From the sequence record NC_048045.1: 64,000 nt of DNA. One strand, written 5' to 3'. The first letter of the stretch is position 1, and each line of letters begins with the position of its first letter. The position numbers and the translations under genes were made by a program. Below, one piece after another: positions 3,001 to 40,314 of this stretch. Below the pieces are notes generated by a model. That model was not told the DNA's origin and made no database searches. It was given only the letters and a program-made list of their open reading frames with translations.

Positions 3001-3402
3001 CCGATGTCGATGATGAGTATGTTCGGTGGCGGCGGCGGCGGCGGGTTCATGGGCTTCAAGGAGGGCGGCTACACCAACGCCCCGGTGACCCACTACTCGG
3101 CCGCGTCGCTGTTCGCGGGCGCCCCGCATTACGCCGAGGGTACGCCCAACACCAGCCTCGCTAATGGCGGTATGCCGGCCATCGTTCACCCGGACGAAGC
3201 CGTGATCCCGCTGTCGCGCGGCCGGAACATCCCGGTCGAATTGAACGGCGCCGGCGGCGGCCATTCCACGACGGTGATCTCGCCGATCACGGTCTACGCC
3301 AACGACGCCGACAGCTTCCGCCCGGCCCAGGCTCAGATCGCCCGCAAGCAGAACAAGACCCTGCGCCGCGCGGCCCTGCGCAACGCCACCATGGCGGCCT
3401 AA
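1..3402 (+). CDS. Tape measure protein, C-terminal part (5' end outside window), with CHAP/TIGR02594-like cell-wall hydrolase domain
   Basis: Frame is open upstream of the ATG at 19. WCAAFVNAVL...GHVGF is a Cys/His amidase-type motif, followed by a long helical region and a Gly/Met-rich tail. Lies directly before the distal tail gene. Confidence 0.8.
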   Translation, partial: KATIASMGDRVYATAGQHLGQTESKDAASLQAYFKANGVTIDPKKLSWCAAFVNAVLNQNGLAGTGDLRASSFKDYGSEVSRQDARKGDIVVLKPQAPGATGHVGFLDSFDKNGRVNILGGNQSDSVKVSSFAADQVVSFRRTGSGGAAGGMDPNFLGGAIKDGQGEEGGSRYERRMNAFKSLGTITGQASPAADALADYQSNLEKLRDIIVSEEKLMKDVGGDGESFFNKTNLEALAAAQKKWNRSITEALNPIAKEARTLAEGNDVLELRAKGLSQEADWQERLTELRNSGLNVDLMQDEAKWTQYLNELKKQGLEIDVKALQLKPDELRYQQGRQDALQAELDLTKALNDAKQAQVARTGSSYDRTLSGLIGGKSKDGESLMQTQQRLAGSVGSDGRNALEALQETAGVMESSRLADAKASMQSQLQIMRESARLNNSQRGVYEDYRNILGELLNKQGASLKELLDSADEQTKQLAQSFVKAKQEFENPPGFQKWADALEPLDKRLQDIKSQFMDDLGGGITDALLGEKVDWRGMLHETFKKQLRAQVDEGLKNVTYLLTGQDPNAAAAKTPEAQALVSAADVQKQAGDTLQQAANSLLQVAQGGTPGAPGMMPGATGPMGAMTSAIQPGMTPMQGLAAQGINSAVQGVGSLIGGDPTQHTGARSFGQRVGGILSSVGSMFGFGGGRPTAIAPGGLGAIGETKTSGGLFGAFMKANNGITGFQKTSTPVGGISSAGGSTAISDALTMGGDLSRNAGMSNALSIGSATISIGSANISGGGLGGGGGGAGGAGGAPGGMGMMGGGGLGGLLGNLNTSTVGVGDNMLSALTMDGSGGPGFMPAGSGLMNLFGGGGGGGFGGGADLSGLTNNAVGIGDNMLTPFMMDGSGGPGFQAAGTALQNLNIGGQGGGFMSMLSNFGPMLQGAMSFAGPLLGALLTGGKKRNNAPDTYRTPNGVFGQASQNAVTGRLLGPRKNIFGEIANMAFQAFTGGMGGMGGGGPMSMMSMFGGGGGGGFMGFKEGGYTNAPVTHYSAASLFAGAPHYAEGTPNTSLANGGMPAIVHPDEAVIPLSRGRNIPVELNGAGGGHSTTVISPITVYANDADSFRPAQAQIARKQNKTLRRAALRNATMAA

Positions 3403-23882: not shown

Positions 23883-24134
23883 TTACTCGTCGGCGAACTT
23901 CATCCCGGCCGCCTTCAGGATGTCCTTGGTATTGCAAGGCTTTCCGTCCAGCAGGAAGCAGGTCTTGGTTTCCCGGACCCGGTCGCCCAGGGCCGCCATC
24001 GCCCGCTCCAGGATGGTGAGCCCATCGCCGAGCGGCGCGATCAGGGCGCCGGTTTCGCGGGGAAGGCGAGGACCGCTGGTGCTCACCTTCTCGGGTTTCT
24101 TGGCGCGCTTAGCGGACAACGCCCTGGACCCCAA
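23883..24134 (-). CDS. Hypothetical protein (start uncertain)
   Basis: Fills the operon gap with GC3-rich codons. Confidence 0.45.
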   Translation of the reverse strand: MGSRALSAKRAKKPEKVSTSGPRLPRETGALIAPLGDGLTILERAMAALGDRVRETKTCFLLDGKPCNTKDILKAAGMKFADE

Positions 24135-24459
24135 CGATGCTGCGGAACTTGTCGAGGGCGGCGTCGACGTCCTGGCCGCTGGCGATCTGGGCCGACAGGT
24201 CCGAGACGGCGGTGTTGATCTTGTCGACTTCAGCCTTGAACACGTCGGGCGTGTCCTTCAGGATGTTGACCAGGGCCAGGATCACGATGTCGACCACCGG
24301 GATGCGAATGGTCTCGCCGTCGGCTTCGTTGAACGAGGCCAGCGACAGGCCGATGGTGAAGCCGCCGGGATTGGTGGGGCTCTCGGTCAGGGCGAGCACC
24401 GACTGGGCGGTGATCACCTCTTCGCGGACCGGGATGAAATCTTCAGTGGGGGAGGTCAT
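24109..24459 (-). CDS. Hypothetical protein
   Basis: AGGA SD-like sequence upstream, tight packing. Confidence 0.6.
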   Translation of the reverse strand: MTSPTEDFIPVREEVITAQSVLALTESPTNPGGFTIGLSLASFNEADGETIRIPVVDIVILALVNILKDTPDVFKAEVDKINTAVSDLSAQIASGQDVDAALDKFRSIVGVQGVVR

Positions 24460-24742
24460 GGGATTCCTGCTGCATGAGGAGGGCGATGCGGTTGACGGCG
24501 TCGACTTCGTTGATCGGGCCGGCGGCGAGCAGGGCCTCGATCGTGTCGGCGATCACCCCCTGCTGGTCGAGGGTCATGATCGCGAGGCCGTAGAGAAGCG
24601 CCTGGGAGGCGTGCCGGCGGATGCTCGGGACGGTGTTGTGGATGATGAGGTCGACCTCGCCACGGTCGCCATCGGCCGGCACGTAGGCCGCGAGGGAGAA
24701 CTGCGGCTCCAGGTCTTCGGGGATGGCGAGCGGGGCGTTCAT
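24443..24742 (-). CDS. Hypothetical protein
   Basis: GGAG then ATG at 24742, downstream of a motif promoter. Confidence 0.6.
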   Translation of the reverse strand: MNAPLAIPEDLEPQFSLAAYVPADGDRGEVDLIIHNTVPSIRRHASQALLYGLAIMTLDQQGVIADTIEALLAAGPINEVDAVNRIALLMQQESHDLPH

Positions 24743-24757
24743 GGGCGGCTCCGGGGG

Positions 24758-24797
24758 ATGTCGTGTCTCCCGACAAGACATGTCAGGATTCACGACA
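24758..24797 (-). promoter_or_regulatory. Variant motif promoter
   Basis: TGTCGTGAATCCTGACA on minus; TTAACCAC at 24807-24814. Confidence 0.45.
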
Positions 24798-24834
24798 TCG
24801 GTCAACGTGGTTAATGGGCGGGTGCGCGCTTTTG

Positions 24835-25770
24835 TCAGGCGTCCCAGACCGCCTCGCCCGGCACGAACTTGCGGAACTGCTGGAAGCCCCGGAAATTGCC
24901 CTGGAACTGGCTATTGAGCCCCGCCGGCCGCGCTTGGTGTTCGAGCGGGGAGGCGTGGACCGGCTGGGAGCCGGCGAGCTTCAGGAAGGTGCCGACGTCG
25001 CGCTCGATCGCGGCCTTGGAGCCGTCGAAGTCACGATAGCTGGCGCGGGCGCAGCGGGCCGCCGAGGAGACGATCAGCAGGCGCTCGACGAGCGGCAGGT
25101 TCGGAAGATTCTTGAACGCGAAGTCGACCTGCCCTGCCAGGGCCATGAAGAGGTCGGATTGATCGCGCATCATCCGCAAGACGTCGTCGAGATCGGCTTC
25201 CAGGTCGACGAACGGCAGGTGCCATTCGTTCGGCCCCAGCAGGCGCGGCGTCTGGGCTTCGAGATCGGCCTTGATCCTGCGGGCCAGGACCTGGATTTCG
25301 TCCTGGGCGCCGGCGTCGTCGCGCAGGGTCAGGAAATTGATCCAGTCGGTGGCCGAGACCACCACCGAGATGTAGCCGAAGAACTCGGTCGCGCGGTTCA
25401 CCCACTGCTTGTGGATGTTCAGGCCGCCCTCGGCGCGCGGCAGGCCCAGCTTGGCGACGCCGGCGCGCACCGCGTCGGCCATCTCCAACCAGATCGCCTC
25501 GGCCGCTTTCTGGTCGGCGTTGGAGAGGTATTCGCCCGGCTGCATGCCCGGCTGGTTCTCGCGGAACAGCGGCACGTAGGGCGCGTCCAGCAGCATCTTC
25601 TTGAGCGGGATGGCCCGGCTCGAAGAGGCGTTGCGACTGAACACCCGGTGGGTCATGAAGTCGGCATGGACCATGCGCGGATAGCGCAGGAGCAGGCTGT
25701 CCAGGCGCTTGCCGTCATGGGTGATCGACGACGCCAGGGGCGTCGTCTGCACGAAGTCGAGGGTAGGCAT
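24835..25770 (-). CDS. thyX: Flavin-dependent thymidylate synthase
   Basis: THRVFSRNASSSRAIP ThyX motif, HKQWVNR, HASPLEHQA. Confidence 0.85.
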   Translation of the reverse strand: MPTLDFVQTTPLASSITHDGKRLDSLLLRYPRMVHADFMTHRVFSRNASSSRAIPLKKMLLDAPYVPLFRENQPGMQPGEYLSNADQKAAEAIWLEMADAVRAGVAKLGLPRAEGGLNIHKQWVNRATEFFGYISVVVSATDWINFLTLRDDAGAQDEIQVLARRIKADLEAQTPRLLGPNEWHLPFVDLEADLDDVLRMMRDQSDLFMALAGQVDFAFKNLPNLPLVERLLIVSSAARCARASYRDFDGSKAAIERDVGTFLKLAGSQPVHASPLEHQARPAGLNSQFQGNFRGFQQFRKFVPGEAVWDA

Positions 25771-25776
25771 GGGGGA

Positions 25777-26313
25777 TTAGTCCTGGTCTTCGGGGAGCAC
25801 GATCATGCCGATCGCGTTGTGGAGGTCGTGGATCGTCCGGTCGTTGACGATGGTCCAGTCGGGGACGATTTTCTCCATCTCCAGTTCGGAGGCGTGCTGC
25901 GACGCCGCGTCCGTGGAGACCTTGCGCGGATCGTCGACGCGGATGATCATCCCGCCCAGGGCGCGCACGGCGTCGGCCTCGTTCAGGAACCGGCAGTCCG
26001 AGCAGACCACCAGCTTGTAATCGCCGGCCGAGCGCTTGAAGGCCTCGATCCAGGTGTCCTCGGCGTAGGAGCGGAACATCTCGGTCCCGATCTTCTGAAG
26101 GATGTCGCGAGGGCTCTTGAAGGGGTAGCGATCCAGCACCTTCTCCTTCAGGATCGGGTCCAGCATCTCCTCCATCGTCACCCCGTAGGCGACGCGGGCG
26201 ATCTCGCGCAGCGGATCGGCGAAGTTGATGTGCTTGTAGCCGGCTTGCTCCAGGCGGGCGGCGGCGGTCGACTTGCCGTGCCCCCGCTTGCCGGTGATGG
26301 CGACGAGTTCCAT
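25777..26313 (-). CDS. Deoxynucleoside monophosphate kinase
   Basis: ITGKRGHGKST P-loop, FADPLR, PRDILQKIGTE, DCRFLNE, HASE. Confidence 0.85.
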   Translation of the reverse strand: MELVAITGKRGHGKSTAAARLEQAGYKHINFADPLREIARVAYGVTMEEMLDPILKEKVLDRYPFKSPRDILQKIGTEMFRSYAEDTWIEAFKRSAGDYKLVVCSDCRFLNEADAVRALGGMIIRVDDPRKVSTDAASQHASELEMEKIVPDWTIVNDRTIHDLHNAIGMIVLPEDQD

Positions 26314-26323
26314 GGTCTGCTCC

Positions 26324-27658
26324 CTAGCGAAGGACGGTGAGGGTTTCGGCCGCGCGGGTGACGGCCGTGTAGAGCCACTTGTCCTCGTCGGCGCGGAAGC
26401 AGCCGGACTCGTCGATCACGACGACGTCCTTCCACTGCGAGCCCTGCGAGGCGTGGCAGGTGATGGCGTAGGCCCAGTCGGCGACGATCGAGTTCTTCAG
26501 CGCCCGCCACGCCTTCTGCTCGGGCGCGGTGTAGCCCTTGGGCGTGCGCGAGAAGTGCTCCTCGAACATGCCCTGGAACATCATCTTGTCGTGGTGCTCG
26601 ACTCCGCTCTCCTCCTGGAACGAGCCCATGAAGGTGGCGTCGCCTTTGGTGAAGCTGACGTCCTTGATCGAGGTGACCTCGGTGCCGTTGGTCAGGTCCG
26701 GGTTGTCGCGGACGTTCTTGCGGATCATCAGCGGCTCACCCTTCTGGGGGCCGACGCGCTCGCCGGGATATTCGACGAAGCCGAACTCCGAGCGCAGTTG
26801 CTGGTTGGTGTTCCAGCGCGTCTTGTTGCGGCCGACGATGAACTGCGGGCGGTCCTCGAAATCGAAGACCTCCTCGTACTCCTGGCGCCGCATCACCTTC
26901 ACGCCGCTGCCGTAGTCGCGGTACGGCAGGTCCTTGCCTTCGCGCGCCAGGGTCGACAGGTGGATGATCGGATTGTCCTTGGCCTGACGGTGGATTTCCG
27001 ACAGGAAGAAGTCAGGGTCGTTCGCCAGCAGGCCTGCGGAGTCCTCGACCGGCGGAAGCTGACCGGGATCGCCCATTGCGAAGATCGGCACGCCGAATTC
27101 CATCAGGTCGTCGGTCATGCGCCGGCCGACCATGGAGGCTTCGTCGACCACGATCAGGCTGGCCAGTTGGATGGCGCTGTCGGGGTTGAGTTGGAAGTTG
27201 ATCTTGTCCTCGCGGTACGCGGCGCTGAGTTCGGCCTCCAGGCGCGTGATCAGCTTGCGTTGCGTGAAGATGTGCTGATCCTTGTCGGGATCGCCGCCGT
27301 CCATGGCCAAGATGTACATCGCCTCCGAGAGCGCTTCCCGGTGGTTTTCCAGGTCGGTTTCCAGTTGCGAGATCGGCGCGGGCTTGGCGCGATAGATGGA
27401 CGAGTGGATCGTGCCGGCGTTGGTGTTCGGGTAGCCCTGGGCCTTGAGCTTGGTGCGCATGACCTTGGCGGCCTTGCCCGTCGGGGCGACGAAGGCCACG
27501 GTCTCGGGCGCGATGCCGAGGGTGTCGAGGATGAAGGGTAGGATGGTCGACTTGCCCGAGCCGGCGAAGCCGGTCATGGTCGTCAGAGGCTGGCCGTCCT
27601 TGATCTTCTCAACGACGACCTTGCGGCACTTGTCCTGTTGATCGCTGAGAGTGGTCAT
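26324..27658 (-). CDS. SF1B helicase (RecD/Dda-like)
   Basis: GFAGSGKS, APTGKAA, VDEASM, GDPGQLPPV, YAITCHASQGSQW, YTAVTRA. Confidence 0.88.
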   Translation of the reverse strand: MTTLSDQQDKCRKVVVEKIKDGQPLTTMTGFAGSGKSTILPFILDTLGIAPETVAFVAPTGKAAKVMRTKLKAQGYPNTNAGTIHSSIYRAKPAPISQLETDLENHREALSEAMYILAMDGGDPDKDQHIFTQRKLITRLEAELSAAYREDKINFQLNPDSAIQLASLIVVDEASMVGRRMTDDLMEFGVPIFAMGDPGQLPPVEDSAGLLANDPDFFLSEIHRQAKDNPIIHLSTLAREGKDLPYRDYGSGVKVMRRQEYEEVFDFEDRPQFIVGRNKTRWNTNQQLRSEFGFVEYPGERVGPQKGEPLMIRKNVRDNPDLTNGTEVTSIKDVSFTKGDATFMGSFQEESGVEHHDKMMFQGMFEEHFSRTPKGYTAPEQKAWRALKNSIVADWAYAITCHASQGSQWKDVVVIDESGCFRADEDKWLYTAVTRAAETLTVLR

Positions 27659-27730
27659 CGGGGTCTTTCGGGCACGAGCGAGGTAACCCGCCCGGACAAG
27701 CCGGGCGGGTTGGTCGAAGCAGAGAGGTGC

Positions 27731-28819
27731 TTAGAAGCGCCCGCGCGTGGTGCGCGGCTTGTCCTCGTCCTCGTCGTCGCGGCTCGAACGACGGGTCGAA
27801 CGCTCTTCACGTTCGTCGCGGTCGTCACGATCGTCGTCGCGCGAGCGGCGGGCCGGACGCTCATCCTCGTCGTCGCGGCTCGAACGACGCGCCGGGCGCT
27901 CTTCGTCCTCGTCACGCGAACGGCGGGCCGGGCGTTCCTCGCGGTCGTCCTTGGCCTTGTCGTCCTCGTCGTCGCGGCTCGAACGGCGGGTCGAACGCTC
28001 TTCACGCTCGTCCTCGTCACGGGCCGGGCGGCGGGTCGAACGCTCTTCGCGCTCGTCCTCGTCGCGCGAGGTGCGCTTGTCCTCGTCGCCGCGCGCGCGG
28101 CGGGCCGGACGCTCGTCTTCGTCCTCGCGACCACGGCGCGAGCCGCGCTTGTCTTCGAGGGCCTTGCCCTTGCCGGCTTCGTAGTCTTCCTGCGAGCCCT
28201 CGACCAGGGAGGCGAGGTCCTTCTCGGCCATCCAGTCGACGATCTTGAACTTGGGCGCGTACTTGGTGACCTTACGGCCGCCCTTGGTCTTGCCCTCGAA
28301 CTCGTTGGAGTCCAGTTCGATGATCGGCAGTTCGCCGGGGTGGTTGCGGAAGCTGTTGCCGAAGTCCTTCAGGAACGCGGCCAGCGCGCGGCGCTTGGAC
28401 ACGTTGTTGGCCTGGAAGACCATCTCGACATAGGGCTCGTCGATCAGACGGAAGTCGATCGTGTACTGCTCGACCGGGCCGTCTTCTTCGCCGTAGGGGC
28501 CGTGGTCCGGCAGGCTACCCTTGGTGGGCTGCGGGCCGTCCGCCAGGGCGACCATTTCTTCGTAGACGACCTTGCCGTCCACCCAGATCACCCAGCCGCG
28601 CTTGTAGGAGCGCAGGTTCGCGGCCATCCGCGTGCCCGTCTTCAGCGGCTCGTCTTCGGCGCCGTAGGAATACGAGCCGTCGTTGCCGTCGAACTTCATG
28701 AAGGCCTTGCCGTCGCCGCCGCCCTTGAGGTTGTTGGCCTCGGTGGCGATCATGGCGTAGAAATCGTCGTTCGAGGTCAGATAGCCGCCGCTCGAACGGG
28801 TGGTCACTTCGTTACCCAT
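27731..28819 (-). CDS. Putative single-stranded DNA-binding protein with Arg/Asp/Glu repeat tail
   Basis: N-terminal MKFDG...Y, GWVIW, YAPKFKIVDW beta-rich domain in a replication module; low-complexity repeat tail. Function inferred. Confidence 0.5.
   Translation of the reverse strand: MGNEVTTRSSGGYLTSNDDFYAMIATEANNLKGGGDGKAFMKFDGNDGSYSYGAEDEPLKTGTRMAANLRSYKRGWVIWVDGKVVYEEMVALADGPQPTKGSLPDHGPYGEEDGPVEQYTIDFRLIDEPYVEMVFQANNVSKRRALAAFLKDFGNSFRNHPGELPIIELDSNEFEGKTKGGRKVTKYAPKFKIVDWMAEKDLASLVEGSQEDYEAGKGKALEDKRGSRRGREDEDERPARRARGDEDKRTSRDEDEREERSTRRPARDEDEREERSTRRSSRDDEDDKAKDDREERPARRSRDEDEERPARRSSRDDEDERPARRSRDDDRDDRDEREERSTRRSSRDDEDEDKPRTTRGRF
27760..28150 (-). repeat. Degenerate coding tandem repeats (RRSSRDDEDE / EREERSTRR / ERPARR)
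   Basis: Repeated tcgtcgtcgcggctcgaacg and gggtcgaacgctcttc units on plus. Confidence 0.75.
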
Positions 28820-28930
28820 AGTGCTGATGCCTATTTTCTGGGAGTTCCCCGGAAGCGAGATTGCCTCCGGGGCTGTTTCTAGGACTAGACTGAGACTAGC
28901 TAGGACTAAGTGAAGAGAACCGAAGTAGAG

Positions 28931-30067
28931 CTATTCCTCGTCCGCCTTCTGAGCACCCTTTTCAGAGATGTTCAGGCGGCCGTGGCCTTCGCCTTCCTTC
29001 ATGTAATCTTCGATATTGAGACCATGTTCAGCCAGCGCCTCGCGAACCGCGCTGGTGTCGAGGGTCTTGCGACCCTTGATCCAGGAAATGGAGCCCTTGA
29101 TCTTGCCGTCCGCAGACTTCGCGACCCGGACCCCGGTATTCGTGAACCACTGCTTCAGAGCCTCCGAAGCAGCTTTGTGGCCCACTTCGGCGGCCTTTTT
29201 CGCAGCCGAGGCGCACCGCTCCTCGACCACAAGGCGTTCGAACTCAGCCAGGATGGGCAGCGGCGTCTCCTTGGAGTTCGCCTCGCCCTTCGTGGGGGTG
29301 GACTTTTTGATGGTCTGCGCGCACGCGACCTTGTAGGGGCAGTAGGTGCAGGAACTGTCGATCTTGCCCTCGGCCATGATCTCGCTCGGGTCTTCGATCT
29401 CGAAGACGTCCCGCGAGCGCTGCATGGCCACGTCGAAGGCCTTCTGGTCGAAGGGCACCACGAAGATTTCGATGTCGTCGAAGAAGCTGGCGTCGACGTA
29501 GATGATCACCGCGTAGTTCGGTCGCCACGACGAAAGCTGACGGGTAAGGCCCATCTGGACGATCGTCTGGCCCCGATGGATGGCCTTTTCCTCCTTCAGA
29601 TTCACGCGGGGATCGACCGATTTGATCTCCACGTTGAAGCAGTTGGAGGGGTGCTCGACATCCTTGCGCGAGCCGCCCAGCGAGGCGATCCCGTAGTTGG
29701 CCAGGGCGTCGTCGTCGGCGTAGATCACCAGCCCGTCGGGCGTGGCCGACAGCGGGGCCTCAGGCGAGATGAGGGTCTTCTGGTTGGCGCCGCCCCAGAT
29801 CAGTTGGGCGTCGCGCGTCAGGTTCTCGGTGATCCACTGCACGCCGGGCTCGACGAAGTGGTTCTCGATCATGTCCCCGCGCTGGAGCGCGCCCCAGGAC
29901 TGCTCATAGTCGGGGTCCTTGGGGGCGTCGTGCTTGGCGTACCAGACCTTGCGCAGGCACCCAAAAGCCTCGGACGCGCCCACGGACTTGGTCCGGTCGT
30001 GCTTCCAGACCTTCTGGCGGGAGTTCACCCACTTGTCGAAGCCGTCTTTGAAATCGATCGCAGCCAT
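28931..30067 (-). CDS. Cas4-like PD-(D/E)XK exonuclease
   Basis: GCLRK, SATPDGL, VEIKS and CTYCPYKVAC (Fe-S-type cysteines). Confidence 0.8.
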   Translation of the reverse strand: MAAIDFKDGFDKWVNSRQKVWKHDRTKSVGASEAFGCLRKVWYAKHDAPKDPDYEQSWGALQRGDMIENHFVEPGVQWITENLTRDAQLIWGGANQKTLISPEAPLSATPDGLVIYADDDALANYGIASLGGSRKDVEHPSNCFNVEIKSVDPRVNLKEEKAIHRGQTIVQMGLTRQLSSWRPNYAVIIYVDASFFDDIEIFVVPFDQKAFDVAMQRSRDVFEIEDPSEIMAEGKIDSSCTYCPYKVACAQTIKKSTPTKGEANSKETPLPILAEFERLVVEERCASAAKKAAEVGHKAASEALKQWFTNTGVRVAKSADGKIKGSISWIKGRKTLDTSAVREALAEHGLNIEDYMKEGEGHGRLNISEKGAQKADEE

Positions 30068-30142
30068 TAGCGTACCGCCGTCATAAAATCCTGGTTTCGT
30101 GACTAGGGTTCATCCAGGGTCACGGGCCTGGGGACGCGGGCG

Positions 30143-30226
30143 CTAGGTCCGGTCGAGCCGGTTGCGCAACCAGATCAGGCCGCCGATCGCGGCGACGACG
30201 AAGAGGGTCAGGATGACGTCGTTCAC
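30143..30226 (-). CDS. Possible 27-aa membrane peptide
   Basis: GTG overlapping the upstream TGA; MNDVILTLFVVAAIGGLIWLRNRLDRT. Confidence 0.35.
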   Translation of the reverse strand: MNDVILTLFVVAAIGGLIWLRNRLDRT

Positions 30227-30852
30227 GCCGTCTTCTCCTGGAGCTTGGCCGCCACCATGTCCTGCATGGCGTAGTAGCAGCGGCGCGTGGCCTGGACGTC
30301 GGCGATTGCGGTGTGGGCGTCTTCGAAGCCTTCGCCGGTCAGGTGCTTGTGCAGGTCGATCAGCTTGGGCTTGCGATAGCCGCCCTGGCGCGAGGGCAGC
30401 TTCATCAGCGGCGTGCCCGCCACGATGGTGTCAAACATCGACTTGCCTTCGAACGGGTCGGCGTCGGGCCGGCCCATGACGCGGCGCACCACGTTGGTCA
30501 CGATCTTGTTGTCGAAGGAGATGTGGTTGTGCCCCACGATCACGTCGGCGACGGCGACGAGGTCCATGAAGGCCTCGATCGCGATGGCCTCGGTCATGCC
30601 GATCTTCTCGGAGATTTCCGGCGAGACGCCGTGGATGGCGGCGGCGCCGCCCTTGCCGTCGCGGCCAATCGTCCAATCGCTCAAGACGCTGGTCGGGACC
30701 GTCCCCAGGCTCAGGATCGTGTCGAGGCGGGCGGCCTCGCGGCGATCGGGATAGGCCAGGATCGCACCCAGTTGGACGATGCGGGGTTGCTCGTCCAGGG
30801 GCTTCTTGCCGTCCGGAAAACCGGTGGTCTCGGTGTCGTAAAAAAGGATCAT
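30223..30852 (-). CDS. DEDDh 3'-5' exonuclease (DnaQ-like)
   Basis: FYDTETTG, IHG, VGHNHISFD, AHTAIADV. Confidence 0.85.
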   Translation of the reverse strand: MILFYDTETTGFPDGKKPLDEQPRIVQLGAILAYPDRREAARLDTILSLGTVPTSVLSDWTIGRDGKGGAAAIHGVSPEISEKIGMTEAIAIEAFMDLVAVADVIVGHNHISFDNKIVTNVVRRVMGRPDADPFEGKSMFDTIVAGTPLMKLPSRQGGYRKPKLIDLHKHLTGEGFEDAHTAIADVQATRRCYYAMQDMVAAKLQEKTA

Positions 30853-30877
30853 CGGGGCGATCTCGTTCGGGAGTGTC

Positions 30878-30917
30878 TTGTTAACCAAGTTCCGGATGGG
30901 TGTCAAGATTCACGACA
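30878..30917 (-). promoter_or_regulatory. Motif promoter
   Basis: TGTCGTGAATCTTGACA-N17-TAACAA on minus; TTAACCAA overlaps the -10. Confidence 0.65.
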
Positions 30918-30924
30918 TCAAAAG

Positions 30925-31587
30925 TCACGAAGGATGACGCACGGCCTTGATGATTTCGTAGACGCGCTGCACCGACAGGCCCAGGTCCGCCGCGATCGAC
31001 GACACCGGCTCGCCGTCGGCGTAGCGCTTCTCGGTCCAGGCGTAGTGCGCCTTCTTGGTCTCCTCGCGCTTGGCCTTGGCCTCGGGCGCGTGGCGGTCGA
31101 TGAAGCGGTAGATCGCGATCCGCGAGACGCCGTATTGCTCGGCGATGAACGGCACGGGCGCGAAGCTGGTGAATTGCAGGACGATGTCGTCGGCGTGGTC
31201 GGCGAGGGCCATGTTGTGCTCCAGGGTATCGAGGGCGCGGTCGATCACCACCGCCGCGCGCTTGGAAGGCTGTTTGGTCAGGAAGCCGCAGGGGCGGCCG
31301 GCGGCGTAGGGCGGCTCGCACCCTTCGATGAGGTATTGTTCGGCGGTAGGGTCCAGCCGCTGGCCGGCCGCGTTCGCCAGCCACCAGTGGGTGCCGCCGT
31401 CGGGGTCGGGCGCGACCATGGGCCGCCAGGGGCCGTCGCGCCCGCCGGACAGATGCCAGAGCGCCTCGGAGGCGACATAGCAGTGCCCGGCGGTCGGGTT
31501 CGAAGCCGTGTACGCGGAACGGTAGGGCTCGCGCAGAAGCTCGGGTGTAAGGGCGCGCTGCACCGCTCTGAGGGTCTCGATGTCCAT
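30925..31587 (-). CDS. Hypothetical protein: Cys-His-Asp (papain/transglutaminase-like) N-domain plus tandem HTH C-domain
   Basis: ATG overlaps the polA TGA; GHCYVASE...THWWL...LDPT; GVSRIAIYR and DLGLSVQRVYEII HTH-like segments. Confidence 0.6.
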   Translation of the reverse strand: MDIETLRAVQRALTPELLREPYRSAYTASNPTAGHCYVASEALWHLSGGRDGPWRPMVAPDPDGGTHWWLANAAGQRLDPTAEQYLIEGCEPPYAAGRPCGFLTKQPSKRAAVVIDRALDTLEHNMALADHADDIVLQFTSFAPVPFIAEQYGVSRIAIYRFIDRHAPEAKAKREETKKAHYAWTEKRYADGEPVSSIAADLGLSVQRVYEIIKAVRHPS

Positions 31588-35766: not shown

Positions 35767-37473
35767 TTACAGGCGCCAGCGGCGGCCGTGGAAAGTGACG
35801 AGCGCGCGCTTGCCGTTCGGGTACTGCACGCAATGGGTGTGCGCCCAGGACGAGGGGCCGGTGTTGTAGCCCATGTCCAGCTTCGAGGTCGTGCCGGTGT
35901 TGTAGGCGCTCTCGAAGATGCCCGGCGAGTGGGTGTGCCCGAACGTCACCTTGGGGCCGATCTTGGCGAACTGCTGGATGTTGCCACGCGAGCCATTGGC
36001 CCCGTTGTGACCGTGGTTCGAGTGCTCGACGCCCCCGATGACGCAGCTTTCGTCCTCGCGCAGGAAGCGCACGCCCTCACAGGCCCAGGGCGTGAAGGCG
36101 TTGCGCATCACCTCCTCGAAGATCGAGAAGCCGCGTTCGCCCGTCCGGATGGCGGCATAGACCGCCTGCTGGCACTTGAGGAAGAACTCGGCATTGACCG
36201 GGTCCTGGCGGTAGTCGGCGGTCTTCAGCCACTTGTTGAGGGCCAGATCATGGTTGCTCTCGACCACCGTGATCTCGGTATCGAAGCGGTCGCGCGCCAG
36301 GATCGACAGGAACATCGCCACCTCGCGCAGTTCGTGCTCGACGCTTTCGGTCCCCTTGACGTACAGACGGAAGCGGTCATGCGGGTCGGCGATGTTGTGG
36401 TGGTTGCGCGCCCGGAAGTCGGAGACGTCGTGGACGAAGACGTGCTCGGGCCGCAGGACGTCGATCATCGACGGGGTCGCCACGCTGGCCCAGACCCGGC
36501 TCCCGTCCGACGACTTCTGCTCGGTCGGATAGAAGCCGAACGTCGCGGCCGAGACCTCGGGGTCGATCTGGGCGACATGGACGTCGCCGGGCGTGATGCA
36601 GGCCACGCGCTGGCCCTCGGTCACGACCCCATCCTTGACCAGGACGTCGAGGTCGTAGAACGAGCCATCGTGGACATCGCCCAGGAGGTGGCGACAGAAG
36701 AACGCGCCATCCTCGTCGACCTCGACCAGGACCGCGCCCAGTTGGTGGTGGAAGCTGGCCTTGATGCCGGCCTTCTTGGGCACGTAGTTGGGCTTGGTGA
36801 CCGCGCCGGTCGTCATGACCTGCTTGGACGGGGTGTGCTTCATCGTCGGAACGCTGACGAGTTGCACCTTGGCGTGAGGGAAGATGCCCCAGCGCTCGCG
36901 CGTGTAGGAGTGGAAGCCCGACAGCGGGTTCTCGGCGGTCGGCAGGGTGTTCATCTCGCCGCAGAAGTCGACCCGGTCGGCGATCCGGATGCGCTCGTTC
37001 ACGAGGTACTGCATCACCCGCTTGTGGAAGAACGCCGCGTGCTTGGCGTGATCCTCGAACAGGCGCTTGGAGTAGGTGAAGCCGGCGATCATGATCTCGC
37101 ACGGGGCATCGCGCCGCAGGTGCTCGGCGTAGGCTTCCAGGTTGTCGACGAACTCCTCGTGGATGTGCGTGGAGTCCTGGGCCGACGACAGGATGAAGCG
37201 GCGCCGGCCGGTCTCGACGCTGACTTCGATCTCACGCGCTGCGGGAGCCGGGCGGTGCGACAACGGGTCCTTGCGCATCGCGTAGAGGCGGTTCTGGAGC
37301 GTGGTGCGCTTGACGCCGTACTTACGCGAGAACGCCCGCTGGCCGCCGGCCTTCTTGACCATCGCGTTGAGGTCCTCGGGCGACACCGAGTAGATGTCGA
37401 ACGGGCCGTCCGGCGGGAGATCGACCTTGGACTTCTTGCGCGCCTGGGACGCGTGTTCGAACTCAGCCGGCAT
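35767..37473 (-). CDS. T5 A1-like metallophosphoesterase/nuclease with N-terminal HTH
   Basis: PGDVH, HDVSD, VESNHD, NHGHNG and FGHTH calcineurin-like motifs; YGVKRTTLQNRL HTH. Confidence 0.7.
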   Translation of the reverse strand: MPAEFEHASQARKKSKVDLPPDGPFDIYSVSPEDLNAMVKKAGGQRAFSRKYGVKRTTLQNRLYAMRKDPLSHRPAPAAREIEVSVETGRRRFILSSAQDSTHIHEEFVDNLEAYAEHLRRDAPCEIMIAGFTYSKRLFEDHAKHAAFFHKRVMQYLVNERIRIADRVDFCGEMNTLPTAENPLSGFHSYTRERWGIFPHAKVQLVSVPTMKHTPSKQVMTTGAVTKPNYVPKKAGIKASFHHQLGAVLVEVDEDGAFFCRHLLGDVHDGSFYDLDVLVKDGVVTEGQRVACITPGDVHVAQIDPEVSAATFGFYPTEQKSSDGSRVWASVATPSMIDVLRPEHVFVHDVSDFRARNHHNIADPHDRFRLYVKGTESVEHELREVAMFLSILARDRFDTEITVVESNHDLALNKWLKTADYRQDPVNAEFFLKCQQAVYAAIRTGERGFSIFEEVMRNAFTPWACEGVRFLREDESCVIGGVEHSNHGHNGANGSRGNIQQFAKIGPKVTFGHTHSPGIFESAYNTGTTSKLDMGYNTGPSSWAHTHCVQYPNGKRALVTFHGRRWRL

Positions 37474-38146
37474 AGAGAAGCTCCGGTTTGGCGCTGACGG
37501 GCTTGGACCAGTCCCAGACGAACCACGCGTAAGCGAAGCGCGGCGCGCCCTTGGTCCCCTCGATCCAGCGGGGGCGATGGCGAAGAGTGACCTTCGCGGC
37601 GAAAGCAGGGTGATCGAAGAGGTCCGAGCGCGAGCGCGCGGCGTCCCATTCGTGGCGGCAGAGGAAGGCGACGAAGCCCTTGTCGGCTTCCATCAGCTTG
37701 AGGGCGTGGCGGGCGGCGCGCTCGGCGTCCTTGCCGTAGGGCGGGTTGGAGATGATGGCGTCCGGGCGCGCCGGCAGCGGAGTGACCTTGCGCTCCTTGC
37801 CCTCGTCATCGATCACCGTCTCGGGGCGGGCCTTCAGCGCGCCCAGGCGATCGAGATCGTCCGGGGTCAGCTTGAAGAAGTCCTCGACCGCGTCGACGTC
37901 GAAGCCCTCGTAGCGATGGATGTCTGTGGAAAGGACCTCCTGCACGTAGGGCCGCAGCGGGTTGGCAATCGCGCCGTTGCCGGCGAAGGGCTCCCAGGCG
38001 AAGAAGCCGGCGAACTCGTCGCCCATGGCCTCAATCAGCGCGTCGAACGCGGGACGAGGCGTCGGATAGAAATCCAAGGGGTTCCTGGCATAGCCCGAGG
38101 CGCCCAGCATGGAGGGGTCTTTGCGACCGGCATCGGAGAGAGACAT
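37463..38146 (-). CDS. Amino (N6A/N4C) DNA methyltransferase-like protein; start 38146 or 38164
   Basis: WEPFAGNG SAM-binding motif and IISNPPY catalytic motif. Confidence 0.75.
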   Translation of the reverse strand: MSLSDAGRKDPSMLGASGYARNPLDFYPTPRPAFDALIEAMGDEFAGFFAWEPFAGNGAIANPLRPYVQEVLSTDIHRYEGFDVDAVEDFFKLTPDDLDRLGALKARPETVIDDEGKERKVTPLPARPDAIISNPPYGKDAERAARHALKLMEADKGFVAFLCRHEWDAARSRSDLFDHPAFAAKVTLRHRPRWIEGTKGAPRFAYAWFVWDWSKPVSAKPELLYAG

Positions 38147-38154
38147 GGCCTGGA

Positions 38155-38194
38155 GGGATGTCATGGTTAACGAAGGGTGTCAAGATTCACGACA
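38155..38194 (-). promoter_or_regulatory. Motif promoter (divergent from the RNA island)
   Basis: TGTCGTGAATCTTGACA-N17-CATCCC on minus; TTAACCAT in the spacer. Confidence 0.6.
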
Positions 38195-38223
38195 TTGACT
38201 GTCGTGACGCACCACGCTAGATA
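38195..38223 (+). promoter_or_regulatory. Sigma70-type promoter of the large ncRNA
   Basis: TTGACT-N17-TAGATA; GCTAGATA resembles the Caulobacter housekeeping -10. Confidence 0.65.
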
Positions 38224-38855
38224 CCCTCGACGAGGCGGTCTCCTGCTCCTAGCGCGTGCCCTCCAGCCTTTCCGAAGGCAATGCGCCGGATCGCTGAGCG
38301 TGGGAATCCAGAGCGAGGCAGCGCTCTGCTCCCCAAAGAGTGGGCCAAGCGGTGCGGGCGGAAAGGCTCAGGGTCCGTGGCTCCATCCAATGCGCAGGAG
38401 AGGCCGTGCTCCTTCTGACGCAGCGGGCGCCCGACGTTGCGGGTTGTGAGGCGGGACTGGCCGAGATGATCAACGGTCCGGGGCGGGAGGGGCTTGACCT
38501 CTCCCGCGTCCGCCTCTAGCGTAGCCAGACATTTAGGCGCAGCACTGCCCTAAGGATGCGGGTCAAGTTCGGGCCGGTCTAGGGCTTGGAAGTCTACCCT
38601 TGGAGCAGGACTGCCTCTGCGACTTGGACGGCCTGGGCGACGCACCCGACCCATGAGGCGAACGCCGGCCAAGACATGGCACTAGGCGTGACGGGGACCA
38701 GAGGTCCCGCCCATTCGCCGCGCCGGCGGCAGCAAAGCTCATTGAGCGGATGGTGGCACGGGCGCGAGCCCGATTTTGAGAGCCAGCGGAGAGCCACCTT
38801 CCTCCCTGGCCCGGCGACGACGAAAGCTGGGTGGCTGTAACCGCTCGTCTGAGGG
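38224..38855 (+). ncRNA. Large (about 630 nt) multidomain structured ncRNA, family unassigned
   Basis: 5'/3' ends complementary (38224-38239 with 38840-38855); 38241-38249 pairs with 38602-38610; many local hairpins; promoter before, terminator after, no credible ORF. Confidence 0.7.
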
Positions 38856-38881
38856 ATGCGTCCCCAAGATCATCAAGACGC

Positions 38882-38912
38882 AAAAGGCCCCGATCTCGCG
38901 ATCGGGGCCTTT
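38882..38912. terminator. Bidirectional intrinsic terminator
   Basis: AAAAGGCCCCGATC-TCGC-GATCGGGGCCTTT (GCGA loop on minus) between convergent RNAs. Confidence 0.8.
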
Positions 38913-38919
38913 CAAAATC

Positions 38920-39008
38920 TGGAGCTACGGGAGGGACTCGAACCCTCATAGGTGTCGCCACCAGCAGAGCTTTGCAGGCCCGCGCCTAACCTCTCGGACC
39001 ACCGTAGC
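38920..39008 (-). tRNA. tRNA-Cys(GCA) with long variable arm
   Basis: GCTACGG/CCGTAGC acceptor, CTGCAAA anticodon loop, GAGGG-TTCGAGT-CCCTC T-arm, U73 plus encoded CCA; 89 nt. Confidence 0.85.
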
Positions 39009-39009
39009 A

Positions 39010-39190
39010 AAATCAGGACTGGCGCCCGAAGGCCCAGCCCCGATCCCGACGATCCAAGGGAGGGCCATAGCTGTCCCAAGGAGCACCGTGACGGCGTGGC
39101 AGGCGACTGAAGCCGTCAAGTCGAAGGGCTTCCGGCGCCGGTCACCCTAACCTCCGGGCTCTTTCGAGCGCGAGTGAGGTCCTCCTACGC
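39010..39190 (-). ncRNA. Structured leader or ncRNA upstream of tRNA-Cys
   Basis: GCTC-GAAA-GAGC and GCC-TTCG-GGC tetraloop hairpins downstream of promoter 39196-39224. Confidence 0.4.
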
Positions 39191-39195
39191 CGATC

Positions 39196-39224
39196 CTTAT
39201 AGCGGAGCCTTCACGTGTCCGCAA
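39196..39224 (-). promoter_or_regulatory. Promoter for the minus-strand RNA unit
   Basis: TTGCGG-N17-TATAAG (GCTATAAG). Confidence 0.5.
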
Positions 39225-39256
39225 CGAAAAATGTGTCGTGAGCGACGACTTTTCTC

Positions 39257-39286
39257 TTGACAGTCCCGATTGGGCTCTGGTAGAGA
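39257..39286 (+). promoter_or_regulatory. Promoter for the tmRNA/tRNA unit
   Basis: TTGACA followed after 17-18 nt by GTAGAGA; start near 39290. Confidence 0.55.
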
Positions 39287-39289
39287 ACA

Positions 39290-39665
39290 GGCATCGTTGT
39301 AATTCGGACAACGGAAACGGCGGCAAGACAGGGGTGCGATTCCCCTCGCCTCCACCATGAGCCCCTGGCGCTGGGAGTACGCGACTCCTGGGCGGGGAGC
39401 GTTACCCCGACGGGATGCGTCCCGAGCAAAGGTGTAGCCAGGGTCTCATGATGGGGGCGATCAGTTTCGATTGGCGCATGTGACTGGAAGACGCAACGGT
39501 GGGTGACCTCCAGGCCAGCTTGCTGGTGATCGGGTCAGTGCAACAGAAATGTCGCATCGAACGACAACGACGTCGTGGCTTACGCCTCGGCTCGTGAAGC
39601 CATCGCCGCCTAATAAGCGGTAGAGGCGTGTCCCGGCGGACGCGCGTGTCACAAAAAGGCCCTGC
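39290..39665 (+). ncRNA. ssrA: tmRNA, circularly permuted two-piece type (acceptor piece to 39357; intervening segment 39358-39452; coding piece from 39453)
   Basis: T-arm AGGGG-TGCGATT-CCCCT plus CGCCTCCACCA precedes GGGGGCG (G3-U70 pair). Resume codon GCA at 39554; tag ASNDNDVVAYASAREAIAA then TAA TAA. Outer ends approximate. Confidence 0.88.
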
Positions 39666-39824
39666 ATCTACGGACCGGGGCCAGTCCGCCTCCCACCTTT
39701 CGCAGGTGGGATCGTCATCATCGCGTGTCTGTCGGAAACTTCACGTAACCATTGACGATCCCATCTCCGTAAGGTGGTCCCATTCTGGAGCGTGGTGTGA
39801 TATCCACGGGGACCACCACACAAA

Positions 39825-39903
39825 CGCGGGGTAGAGGAGTCCGGTTGTCCTCGTCTGGCTCATAACCAGGAGATCGGGGGTTCAAATCCCCCTCCCGCTC
39901 CCA
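39825..39903 (+). tRNA. tRNA-Met(CAT), initiator-like
   Basis: CGCGGGG 5' end with unpaired C1, CTCATAA loop, GGGGG-TTCAAAT-CCCCC, CCA. Confidence 0.85.
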
Positions 39904-40146
39904 ATGCGAACGCCGGCTATTGAGAACGAAGGCGTGACAGGCTCGGAGAGAACGAGCACTGCAATCCGGGCTATGAGGCCGTGATGTAGCGGACGTCGGC
40001 GAGATCAGACGTGACACCTGGAGAGACGGGACCAGTTTTCCAGGCCGCATGCTCGGCGCGCCGCGATCCGCCCTAGGGTCAAGCGTCAGGGGATGAGGCT
40101 AGTCTCCGGCTTCCGAGCTAGGGCATGCGGCTTGGAAAGCTGGTTT
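39904..40146 (+). ncRNA. Structured inter-tRNA RNA(s)
   Basis: 23-bp continuous stem 40031-40053/40122-40144; modules shared with the large ncRNA. Confidence 0.5.
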
Positions 40147-40233
40147 GGTACGGTGGCTCGACAGGTAAGGCATCGGCCTCATAAGCCGAGGGACTAGCTC
40201 CCGATCCTGGTTCAAATCCAGGTCGTACCTCCA
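40147..40233 (+). tRNA. tRNA with CAT anticodon (Met/Ile2) and long variable arm
   Basis: GGTACGG/TCGTACC acceptor, TCGGC-CTCATAA-GCCGA, V-arm GGGA-CTAGC-TCCC, CCTGG-TTCAAAT-CCAGG, U73-CCA; 87 nt. Confidence 0.82.
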
Positions 40234-40274: not shown

Positions 40275-40314
40275 TGTCGTGAATCTTGACACTCCGGGTT
40301 GAGCTAGGCATTAT
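40275..40314 (+). promoter_or_regulatory. Motif promoter of the cadherin-repeat gene
   Basis: TGTCGTGAATCTTGACA-N17-CATTAT. Confidence 0.7.

Follow-up and report, generated by a model that had tools for sequence, protein, structure and literature searches.

Positions 38224-38860 on the plus strand of Caulobacter phage CcrBL10 very probably encode a real and new structured noncoding RNA (ncRNA) that lies outside the described RNA families: paired positions covary in nine homologues, no open reading frame (ORF) is conserved, and no real match to an Rfam family is found. The window analysed, 64,000 nucleotides (nt) of record NC_048045.1, is identical to CcrBL10 (MH588544), a phiCbK-like siphovirus with a 221-kb genome that belongs to the subfamily Dolichocephalovirinae. 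The best-conserved part of the RNA is a two-hairpin module of about 55 nt. We consider the odds even that this module represents an unrecognised, widespread class of tailed-phage RNA (a new self-cleaving ribozyme, or a regulatory element bound by a polymerase or a protein) that is arrayed one to five times in a new class of large ncRNA. Large, ornate RNAs from the tRNA islands of phages are already known as a type; this RNA family and its repeated module are not. Large structured phage RNAs are rare, and the roles of the best-known ones, GOLLD and ROOL, are still an open question. Since the hosts of the RNA are phiCbK-type phages, which belong to the genetically tractable laboratory system of Caulobacter crescentus, its function is testable.

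The RNA is flanked by a minus-strand DNA methylase gene (ORF 37463-38164) and by a cluster of stable-RNA genes, and the GenBank record of CcrBL10 carries no annotation between the methylase gene and the first gene of that cluster, tRNA-Cys. Measured from promoter to hairpin terminator, the transcript would be about 650-690 nt long, with a start site probably near 38228-38231. A blastn search with the RNA region retrieved 26 Caulobacter phage records, with identity ranging from 92% (Rogue group) down to 67% (phiCbK group), as well as a 55-nt core with about 90-91% identity in two Brevundimonas phages. Full-length alignment revealed that the whole RNA is present in Brevundimonas phages Gurke and Kikimora, where it lies between a TTGACA promoter of its own and a strong terminator. 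Judging from these alignments, the Dolichocephalovirinae keep the RNA, in all phiCbK-like Caulobacter phages and in the Brevundimonas phages. Outside the module, the mean column identity is about 61% in an alignment of five phages.

The 60 nt upstream of the RNA (block 38165-38223) are nearly invariant in eight Caulobacter phages, while identity in the transcribed part falls to 67%, which identifies the plus strand as the transcribed one. The block contains a promoter, TTGACT-15 nt-GCTAGATA (38195-38223, plus strand), that fits the consensus of the Caulobacter sigma-73 factor, TTGACgS-N10-14-GCtANAWC; a scan for E. coli-type promoters made no call at this position. In the Brevundimonas phages, TTGACAGGC is found at the equivalent position, 3′ of an upstream terminator. 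The -35 box is straddled by a perfect inverted repeat, TCACGACA-TTGAC-TGTCGTGA (38187-38207, plus strand), which has no mismatches (0.01 such repeats are expected by chance) and is unchanged in the eight Caulobacter phages. The octamer TGTCGTGA, a candidate operator of a phage regulator, has 12 occurrences in the window versus 2.3 expected. It is also seen at 39234-39241 and 40275-40282, just 5′ of the TTGACA boxes of the promoter of the transfer-messenger RNA (tmRNA) gene and of a promoter at 40286.

At the other end of the RNA, a G+C-rich hairpin terminator with a 13-bp stem (38883-38912) is common to the RNA on the plus strand and to the converging tRNA-Cys gene on the minus strand. This hairpin is conserved, and the record of phage CcrKarma annotates a terminator equivalent to it. 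Its T-run is good on the minus strand; on the plus strand it is weak in CcrBL10 and better in phiCbK and Gurke. Just upstream, a 3′ hairpin GCGTC..CCAAGAT..GACGC (38858-38881, plus strand) has a stem that is invariant in nine homologues, and its CCAAGAT loop is kept in the seven homologues from Caulobacter phages.

The minimum free energy predicted for the RNA is -308.5 kcal/mol, which is not beyond chance for a sequence this rich in G+C (z = -1.4 for the plus strand and -1.7 for the minus strand). Since folding energy alone was insignificant, the fold was judged by comparison with relatives. RNAalifold, applied to an alignment of nine homologues, yielded 26 helices with a total of 123 pairs; at 42 of these, both sides have changed. 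Paired combinations filled 88.7% of the alignment cells, versus 34-47% when the 3′ partners were slid by 1-3 columns, a figure that is inflated since the structure came from the same alignment. The number of covarying pairs (42 versus 10-19 in the slid controls) and of pair types is harder to dismiss; the observed values were reached by none of 500 shuffles.

The 5′ domain (38243-38397, plus strand) is closed by CTGCTC at 38243-48 paired with GCGCAG at 38392-97, a helix with four covarying pairs. It holds hairpins at 38252-38284 (with GCCTT-TCCG-AAGGC at the tip), 38287-38377 and 38310-38327 (AGAGCG/CGCTCT); its helices, numbers 2-6 of the comparative fold, have two to four covarying pairs each. 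Further downstream, GAGGCGG and CCGCCTC close a three-way junction (38448-38516, plus strand) that contains a hairpin with a GGCCGAGA loop and a hairpin GCGGGAGGGG-CTTGA-CCTCTCCCGC. The same fold is predicted in seven of seven homologues from Caulobacter phages, and compensatory versions of the first hairpin (GGAC/GUCC, GGCC/GGCC and CGCCC/GGGCG) are apparent when the sequences are read by eye. In the 3′ domain (plus strand), hairpins CGGGC-GCGA-GCCCG at 38759-72, 38782-38810 and GACGA 38819-23/TCGTC 38845-49 correspond to helices 22-24 of the comparative fold, with two covarying pairs each.

An earlier, sequence-only reading of this DNA had proposed a large structured ncRNA beside tRNA genes, equipped with its own promoter and terminator, and the covariation in nine phage lineages, the nearly invariant promoter block and the conserved terminator hairpin bear it out. 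All sequence elements that it listed are present: CCCTCGACGAGGCGGT at 38224 and ACCGCTCGTCTGAGGG at 38840, TCCTGCTCC at 38241 and GGAGCAGGA at 38602, GCCTTTCCGAAGGC at 38266, AGAGCG at 38310 with CGCTCT at 38322, GAGGCGG at 38448 with CCGCCTC at 38510, GCGGGAGGGG at 38483 with CCTCTCCCGC at 38498, TTAGG at 38533 with CCTAA at 38549, GGGACCAGAGGTCCC at 38694, CGGGCGCGAGCCCG at 38759, and AGCCACC at 38792 with GGTGGCT at 38830. Compensatory changes in the nine homologues back the GCCTT/AAGGC hairpin, AGAGCG/CGCTCT, the GAGGCGG/CCGCCTC junction with its inner GCGGGAGGGG/CCTCTCCCGC hairpin, GGGACC/GGTCCC and CGGGC/GCCCG. About a third of the proposed helices, the closing helix included, are not conserved. 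The 15-bp closing helix is strong (-25.9 kcal/mol) in CcrBL10 and Rogue only; in the phiCbK group, the two ends of the RNA pair with each other no better than with ends from other lineages, and its middle strand is also required for the covarying 38819/38845 helix. The outer 5 bp of the closing helix, at positions +1 to +5 counted from the -10 box, may for this reason not even be transcribed. The supposed closure of a large domain by TCCTGCTCC/GGAGCAGGA is broken in CcrBL57 (alignment read by eye), and the comparative fold pairs 38243-48 with 38392-97 instead. Finally, AGCCACC/GGTGGCT is restricted to CcrBL10 and Rogue and conflicts with the covarying pairing of GACGA 38819-23 with TCGTC 38845-49.

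The window, the relatives and metagenomic copies were scanned with the models of Rfam 15, at the gathering score and then at E values up to 10 with lax filters. These scans returned tRNA, tmRNA and noise only; within 38224-38860, the single match at E up to 10 was noise (FsrA, 15.7 bits, E = 2.7). GOLLD (RF01998) gave no match at the gathering score, nor at E up to 10 over 37900-39300, ROOL (RF03087) gave none at either setting, and there was no match in the window region to RNase P RNA, OLE, or group I and group II introns, so that none of the families weighed in the sequence-only reading is recovered. The RNase P model served as a positive control, with a score of 253 bits for a metagenomic locus (L301). 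A literature search found no account of a phiCbK-type ncRNA, of GOLLD or ROOL relatives, of RAGATH motifs or of phage ribozymes that bears on the RNA; published strings that match the module do so by chance only, e.g., in a SAM/SAH riboswitch construct. The suspicion that the RNA could be assigned to neither GOLLD nor ROOL and might form a new class has therefore held.

The canonical module (38652-38714, plus strand) reads GC-GA-ACGCC, a loop beginning GGCCAAGA, then GGCGU-GAC-G-GGGACC-AGA-GGUCCC. Its general layout over about 55 nt is GC-GA, hairpin 1 (ACGCC/GGCGU), GAC-R, hairpin 2, and then an A and a pyrimidine-rich tail. The loop of hairpin 1 is variable and often begins with GGCC(G/A)AGA; hairpin 2 has a variable stem of 4-6 bp and a GAGAGA or CAGAGG loop. 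We built a covariance model of the module, R1, from 31 copies and ran it over the window. It retrieved three copies, all on the plus strand and all in the RNA island: the canonical one (35 bits, E = 1e-7), a second at 39900-39959 (38.6 bits, E = 1e-8), whose conserved core (GCGAAC...) starts 2 nt 3′ of the tRNA-fMet CCA, and a third at 39983-40032 (27.2 bits, E = 1e-5), which has a compensatory ACGUC/GACGU in hairpin 1.

Relatives carry more copies. In CcrColossus, CcrPW, Domovoi and Kabachok, the counterpart of the RNA holds three canonical modules, spaced 225-265 nt apart; only a few nt separate the end of the third module of Colossus from the downstream tRNA-Cys, after which tmRNA and tRNA-Met come in the same direction. 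Metagenomic contig L131 has about eight modules, about five of them in a 2-kb stretch without large ORFs. In Gurke, a weak match to the module model (2807-2864 of L010, 12 bits) lies about 190 nt 5′ of the main module. It was equated with the CcrBL10 junction at 38448-38516 by its spacing rather than by alignment, and that junction is probably a degenerate module copy. The RNA of CcrBL10 would then have one canonical and one degenerate copy, where the relatives have three to five. Given these copy numbers and the degenerate copy in CcrBL10, the large RNA is, as far as the sequences tell, an array of module-ended units whose number varies.

In an alignment of 74 distinct module copies, all five pairs of hairpin 2 covary, with up to six pair types per position, whereas hairpin 1 is nearly invariant. 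Apart from the ACGUC/GACGU of the third copy in the window, hairpin 1 has one further compensatory variant, ACGCA/UGCGU, in an A+T-rich copy from a Mannheimia phage. Hairpin 2 is followed by an A and a G-poor, U/C-rich tract; TTT is found within 14 nt in 18 of 44 copies versus 4 of 45 upstream controls. The GA/GA flanks of hairpin 1 had suggested a kink-turn, a candidate that we rejected, since what should be its C helix forms a hairpin of its own.

Copies of the module are found well outside the phiCbK-like phages. A pattern scan of metagenomes yielded about 45 distinct true copies with a proper hairpin 2 among the first 120 matches listed. With a 44-nt module consensus, blastn detected it in isolated phages of Ralstonia (GP4 group), Planktothrix, Synechococcus, Rhizobium, Rhodobacter, Pseudomonas, Erwinia, Mannheimia, Sinorhizobium, Stenotrophomonas and possibly Bacteroides, and R1 confirmed it in all four phages fetched (GP4, Pag-Yong1, RHph_N2 and the Mannheimia phage). 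Looser patterns were of little use: GAACGCCGGCCNAGA in viral contigs gave mostly chance matches among those listed, as did GAACGCCGGCN{3,30}GGCGTGAC in genome contigs, where none of the first 120 listed had hairpin 2. Among 5426 complete E. coli genomes, the module is present in one, strain 21AR0133, where two minimal copies (about 2296-2325 and 2489-2523 of L386), one of them without hairpin 1, lie in a lambdoid prophage within a 1-kb unannotated and untranslated stretch (2048-3079) downstream of a gene for a CI-type repressor.

Modules are located in short intergenic gaps, 10-35 nt 5′ of the ribosome-binding site and ATG of unrelated phage genes. These include genes for HNH endonucleases and genes that, from their translations alone, resemble ParB-methylase, RecT, VRR-NUC and head-tail adaptor genes. 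Other copies are found 4-10 nt 5′ of tRNAs with long variable arms, or within about 10 nt 3′ of a tRNA CCA. Tandem pairs are common (39900 and 39983 in the window, 1072 and 1165 in GP4, 1042 and 1193 in Pag-Yong1). With respect to the flanking ORFs of metagenomic contigs, the orientation of the module shows a mild same-strand bias (24:15 and 26:13), in a test that is noisy in G+C-rich DNA. Being short, conserved, outside Rfam and distributed over alpha-, beta- and gammaproteobacterial and cyanobacterial phages, and possibly those of Bacteroides, the module may matter more than the large RNA itself, and its partner or activity is likely to play a general part in phage gene expression.

Four facts narrow down the function: loops and junctions that are fixed while stems are free to vary, conservation across phages of different bacterial phyla, occurrence in mRNA leaders, beside tRNAs and, in repeated form, in a dedicated ncRNA, and the CcrBL10 RNA's own promoter and terminator. 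The reading that we favour, tentatively and with a probability of roughly 0.3, is that the module is a specific site for a conserved partner, and that the large RNA and the tRNA-flanked copies serve as a multivalent scaffold or decoy. The partner, bound with high affinity, would come either from the host (a machine such as RNA polymerase) or from the phage (a small RNA-binding protein). Where a module lies just 5′ of a ribosome-binding site in a phage mRNA, the partner would control the downstream gene. The large RNA, together with extra copies cut from the neighbouring operon by tRNA processing, would present the site many times and so titrate the partner during infection; the tRNA-flanked copies would be freed by RNase P and 3′ processing. 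A strongly covarying hairpin 2 with a fixed loop and fixed flanks is the usual mark of a specific binding site, and a site that occurs singly in mRNA leaders and multiplied in an ncRNA with its own promoter and terminator would, by analogy, follow the logic of a sponge RNA. CsrB and RsmZ are protein-sponge ncRNAs of this kind, which contain, as here, repeats of a short hairpin site that mRNA leaders carry too. The CcrBL10-type RNA differs from them in having one to five sites only and much further conserved structure, and its partner is postulated.

Several observations weigh against this reading. No protein was found to co-occur with the module in the loci examined; a Ro60/TROVE gene stands beside the RNA in Brevundimonas phages, but CcrBL10 and phiCbK lack such a gene, and in other phages it shows no linkage to the module. 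A single canonical module in the CcrBL10 RNA makes for poor multivalency, and a sponge role would not explain why structure is conserved, with covariation, over about 500 nt outside the module. The near-invariance of hairpin 1 is partly built in, since the pattern by which the metagenomic copies were retrieved fixes part of this hairpin. Lastly, we found no expression data for the RNA, and gp127-129 are not mentioned in the supplements of the phiCbK RNA-seq paper.

An alternative that we regard as unlikely makes the module a small self-cleaving ribozyme, or the target of a conserved host RNase, that punctuates polycistronic phage transcripts. It would split cistrons, trim tRNA trailers and leaders and give the downstream RNA a structured end, and the large RNA would be a precursor or a stable product. 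The size of about 50 nt, some 20 nearly invariant nt at junctions and in loops and the covarying stems resemble twister, pistol and hatchet ribozymes, and the contexts, too, are familiar from phage ribozymes: short gaps that separate co-directional genes, tandem pairs, and sites immediately 3′ of tRNAs, which are also those of the hepatitis delta virus (HDV)-like theta ribozymes. The nt before GAAC could pair with the start of the hairpin 1 loop, and this putative pseudoknot, followed by a junction and a hairpin, recalls the topology of the pistol fold. The pseudoknot stem, S1, is short and weakly supported, however (2.80 versus 2.45 +/- 0.09 contiguous pairs). In addition, pistol, twister, hatchet and HDV models gave no match at E up to 10 with lax filters in two module-bearing stretches; the best match was Hammerhead_II at 13.1 bits and E = 4 (gathering score 37), and its CUGANGA core is absent. 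Thus, in spite of the likeness to pistol, twister, hammerhead and theta ribozymes in size, conservation pattern, intergenic and tRNA-adjacent contexts and tandem copies, the module matches none of their models and lacks their defining cores. Known ribozyme classes were also absent from the 20 metagenomic contigs scanned, and the E. coli prophage copy without hairpin 1 is hard to square with a catalytic core. Threading of the module by hand onto HDV-like and hammerhead folds was rejected, as neither the helix order nor the cores fit.

We are equally hesitant to see in the module a processive antitermination element of the nut or put type. As nascent RNA, it would bind RNA polymerase during elongation, either by itself or by way of an N-like protein, and would shield long untranslated or multi-gene phage transcripts from Rho and from terminators; the large RNA would then be the structured leader of a stable-RNA operon that has become autonomous in CcrBL10. 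The E. coli prophage speaks for this idea. Its two module-like elements lie downstream of the CI-type repressor gene, in what we take, from the lambda map, to be the position of nutL, and are followed by an Arg/Lys-rich ORF of 45 amino acids (2603-2740), the N-terminus of which resembles the arginine-rich motif of lambda N. Hairpin 2 itself, with a 5-bp G+C stem and a purine loop GARAGA, resembles lambda boxB. This lambda-type arrangement of a boxB-like hairpin, position and small basic ORF is seen in the E. coli prophage and not in CcrBL10, and Pfam gave no match to the ORF. The module-bearing RNA of Colossus is co-directional with tRNA-Cys, tmRNA and tRNA-Met, no gene or terminator is annotated between them, and the four may thus form one untranslated operon. 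The G-poor pyrimidine-rich tract 3′ of the module would also suit such a role. A precedent is provided by the put RNA of phage HK022, a pair of stem-loops of about 70 nt in which a G-A pair at the fork contacts the conserved zinc domain of the β′ subunit (PMC9378689). A similar contact would explain why the module sequence is conserved across bacterial phyla.

Other observations argue against antitermination. The RNAs of CcrBL10 and the Brevundimonas phages terminate about 170 nt after the module, and read-through would produce RNA antisense to tRNA-Cys or to an ORF; the modules of the tmRNA operon are located about 600 nt after the promoter and not at the start of the transcript. R1, run with filters off, found nothing above 5 bits in the early region of HK022 (24000-31000). 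No boxA (CGCUCUUA-like) was seen by eye, in sequences on which no search for it was made. Like put and nut, the module combines two stem-loops within about 55-65 nt, occurs in the leaders and intercistronic gaps of phages and has a boxB-like hairpin 2, but it is unrelated to put in sequence, extends beyond lambdoid phages and stands next to tRNAs, and the CcrBL10 RNA ends soon after it.

It is quite improbable, in our view, that the RNA works in the manner of GOLLD and ROOL, as a phage RNA of the tRNA island that self-assembles into an RNA-only multimer. The RNA is comparable to them in being phage-borne, multi-domain and of similar size (GOLLD and ROOL have about 600-800 nt), in having an ornate fold and a function that is open, and in lying next to tRNAs, here also to tmRNA. 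GOLLD, ROOL and OLE are reported to form homo-oligomers (PMC12286853). Inspection of the module revealed a self-complementary segment, GCCGGC, which is not kept in every copy. The failure of the GOLLD and ROOL models to match at E up to 10 tells against a relationship. Unlike GOLLD and ROOL, the CcrBL10 RNA is found in alphaproteobacterial phages, consists of repeated units around a short module and has its own sigma-70-type promoter and terminator.

We hold it very unlikely that the RNA is a giant Y-RNA-like partner of the Ro60 (Rsr) protein. This possibility is raised by a gene with TROVE and vWA domains that is located immediately upstream of the RNA, on the same strand, in Brevundimonas phages (1130-2500 of L010, 1131-2501 of L011 and 850-2235 of L374); a Ro60-type gene is also present in Colossus (2501-3910 of L385) and CcrPW. 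Moreover, the start of the module, (G)GCGAACG, resembles the motif GNCGAAN0-1G proposed for Rsr binding (PMC4201824), reading GGCGAACG in CcrBL10, 430 nt from the 5′ end of the RNA, and NGCGAACG in other copies. However, CcrBL10 and the phiCbK group have the RNA and no TROVE gene, the TROVE genes of Colossus and CcrPW lie 24 kb from the RNA, and in four other phages the TROVE genes are not beside a module and have weak tRNA-like matches there instead. Most module-bearing phages, e.g., 16 Ralstonia records, are not among the TROVE matches. Y RNAs of the YrlA type are encoded on the strand of a Ro60/TROVE gene and within about 4 kb of it, as is the RNA in the Brevundimonas phages. In addition, Y RNAs are 80-130 nt long and contain a tRNA-like domain, while the RNA has about 650 nt and no tRNA-model match inside it in any homologue. 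As compared with the bacterial Y RNA YrlA, therefore, the Brevundimonas RNA shares a place directly 3′ of a Ro60-type gene and a GNCGAA-like module start, but the RNA is five times larger, has no D/T domain and persists in phages without Ro60.

The survey of Ro60-type genes yielded some observations of its own. By tblastn, such genes are present in 98 phage records, and those of Colossus and CcrPW are preceded by a 760-nt unannotated gap. Weak tRNA-model matches just 5′ of the TROVE genes of Xanthomonas phage Sopo (2315-2385 of L381) and Rhizobium phage RHph_TM39 (1950-2014 of L382) are probably unannotated Y RNAs of the YrlA type.

The locus is almost certainly not a protein gene on the minus strand, as which it is annotated in phiCbK (gp128, 1577-2149 of L002), Karma (gp130), Rogue (gp125), Ccr10 (gp126c), Magneto (gp126) and Swift (gp125): a frame of 200-211 codons is open in phiCbK, Karma and Ccr10, but it is interrupted in CcrBL10 (109 codons), CcrBL57 (106 codons), Magneto (173 codons, in another frame) and the Brevundimonas phages, including Gurke; indels between lineages are divisible by three in only 1 of 16 and 0 of 20 cases; substitutions between close pairs have no 3-base periodicity; the promoter and the covarying helices are on the plus strand; and long antisense frames are to be expected at 65-70% G+C. 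The hypothetical proteins over the RNA, in at least six records, are probably artefacts of such antisense frames and not genes, and the annotation of the six phage records is thereby corrected. The non-triplet indels and the lack of a conserved frame also agree with the opinion of the sequence-only reading that the stretch holds no credible ORF.

The remainder of the stable-RNA island (38920-40233, both strands) was delineated by Rfam and tRNA scans. It comprises an 89-nt tRNA-Cys(GCA) at 38920-39008 on the minus strand, a two-piece (permuted) tmRNA at 39295-39613 (Rfam tmRNA_permuted, 82 bits) that is unannotated in the CcrBL10 GenBank record, tRNA-fMet at 39825-39903 and an 87-nt tRNA-Met(CAU) at 40147-40233 on the plus strand. 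The tmRNA is preceded by a promoter-like sequence TTGACA-N17-TAGAGA at about 39262-39290. The tandem modules are followed by an imperfect hairpin about 115 nt long (about 40033-40146), which ends 1 nt before tRNA-Met. Both tRNA-Cys and tRNA-Met carry long variable arms, which as a rule are seen in Leu, Ser, Tyr and Sec tRNAs only. The two tRNAs are kept throughout the phage subfamily, and several relatives have a module directly 5′ of them.

Two metagenomic tRNA arrays contained further unusual RNAs. In contig L301, a full bacterial class A RNase P RNA (2663-3035, 253 bits) is located within the array and may be phage-encoded; the same contig has a module 6 nt 5′ of tRNA-Leu. In L319, two matches to the tRNA model of about 140 nt each (1748-1890 and 1972-2109) suggest tRNAs with large insertions or introns.

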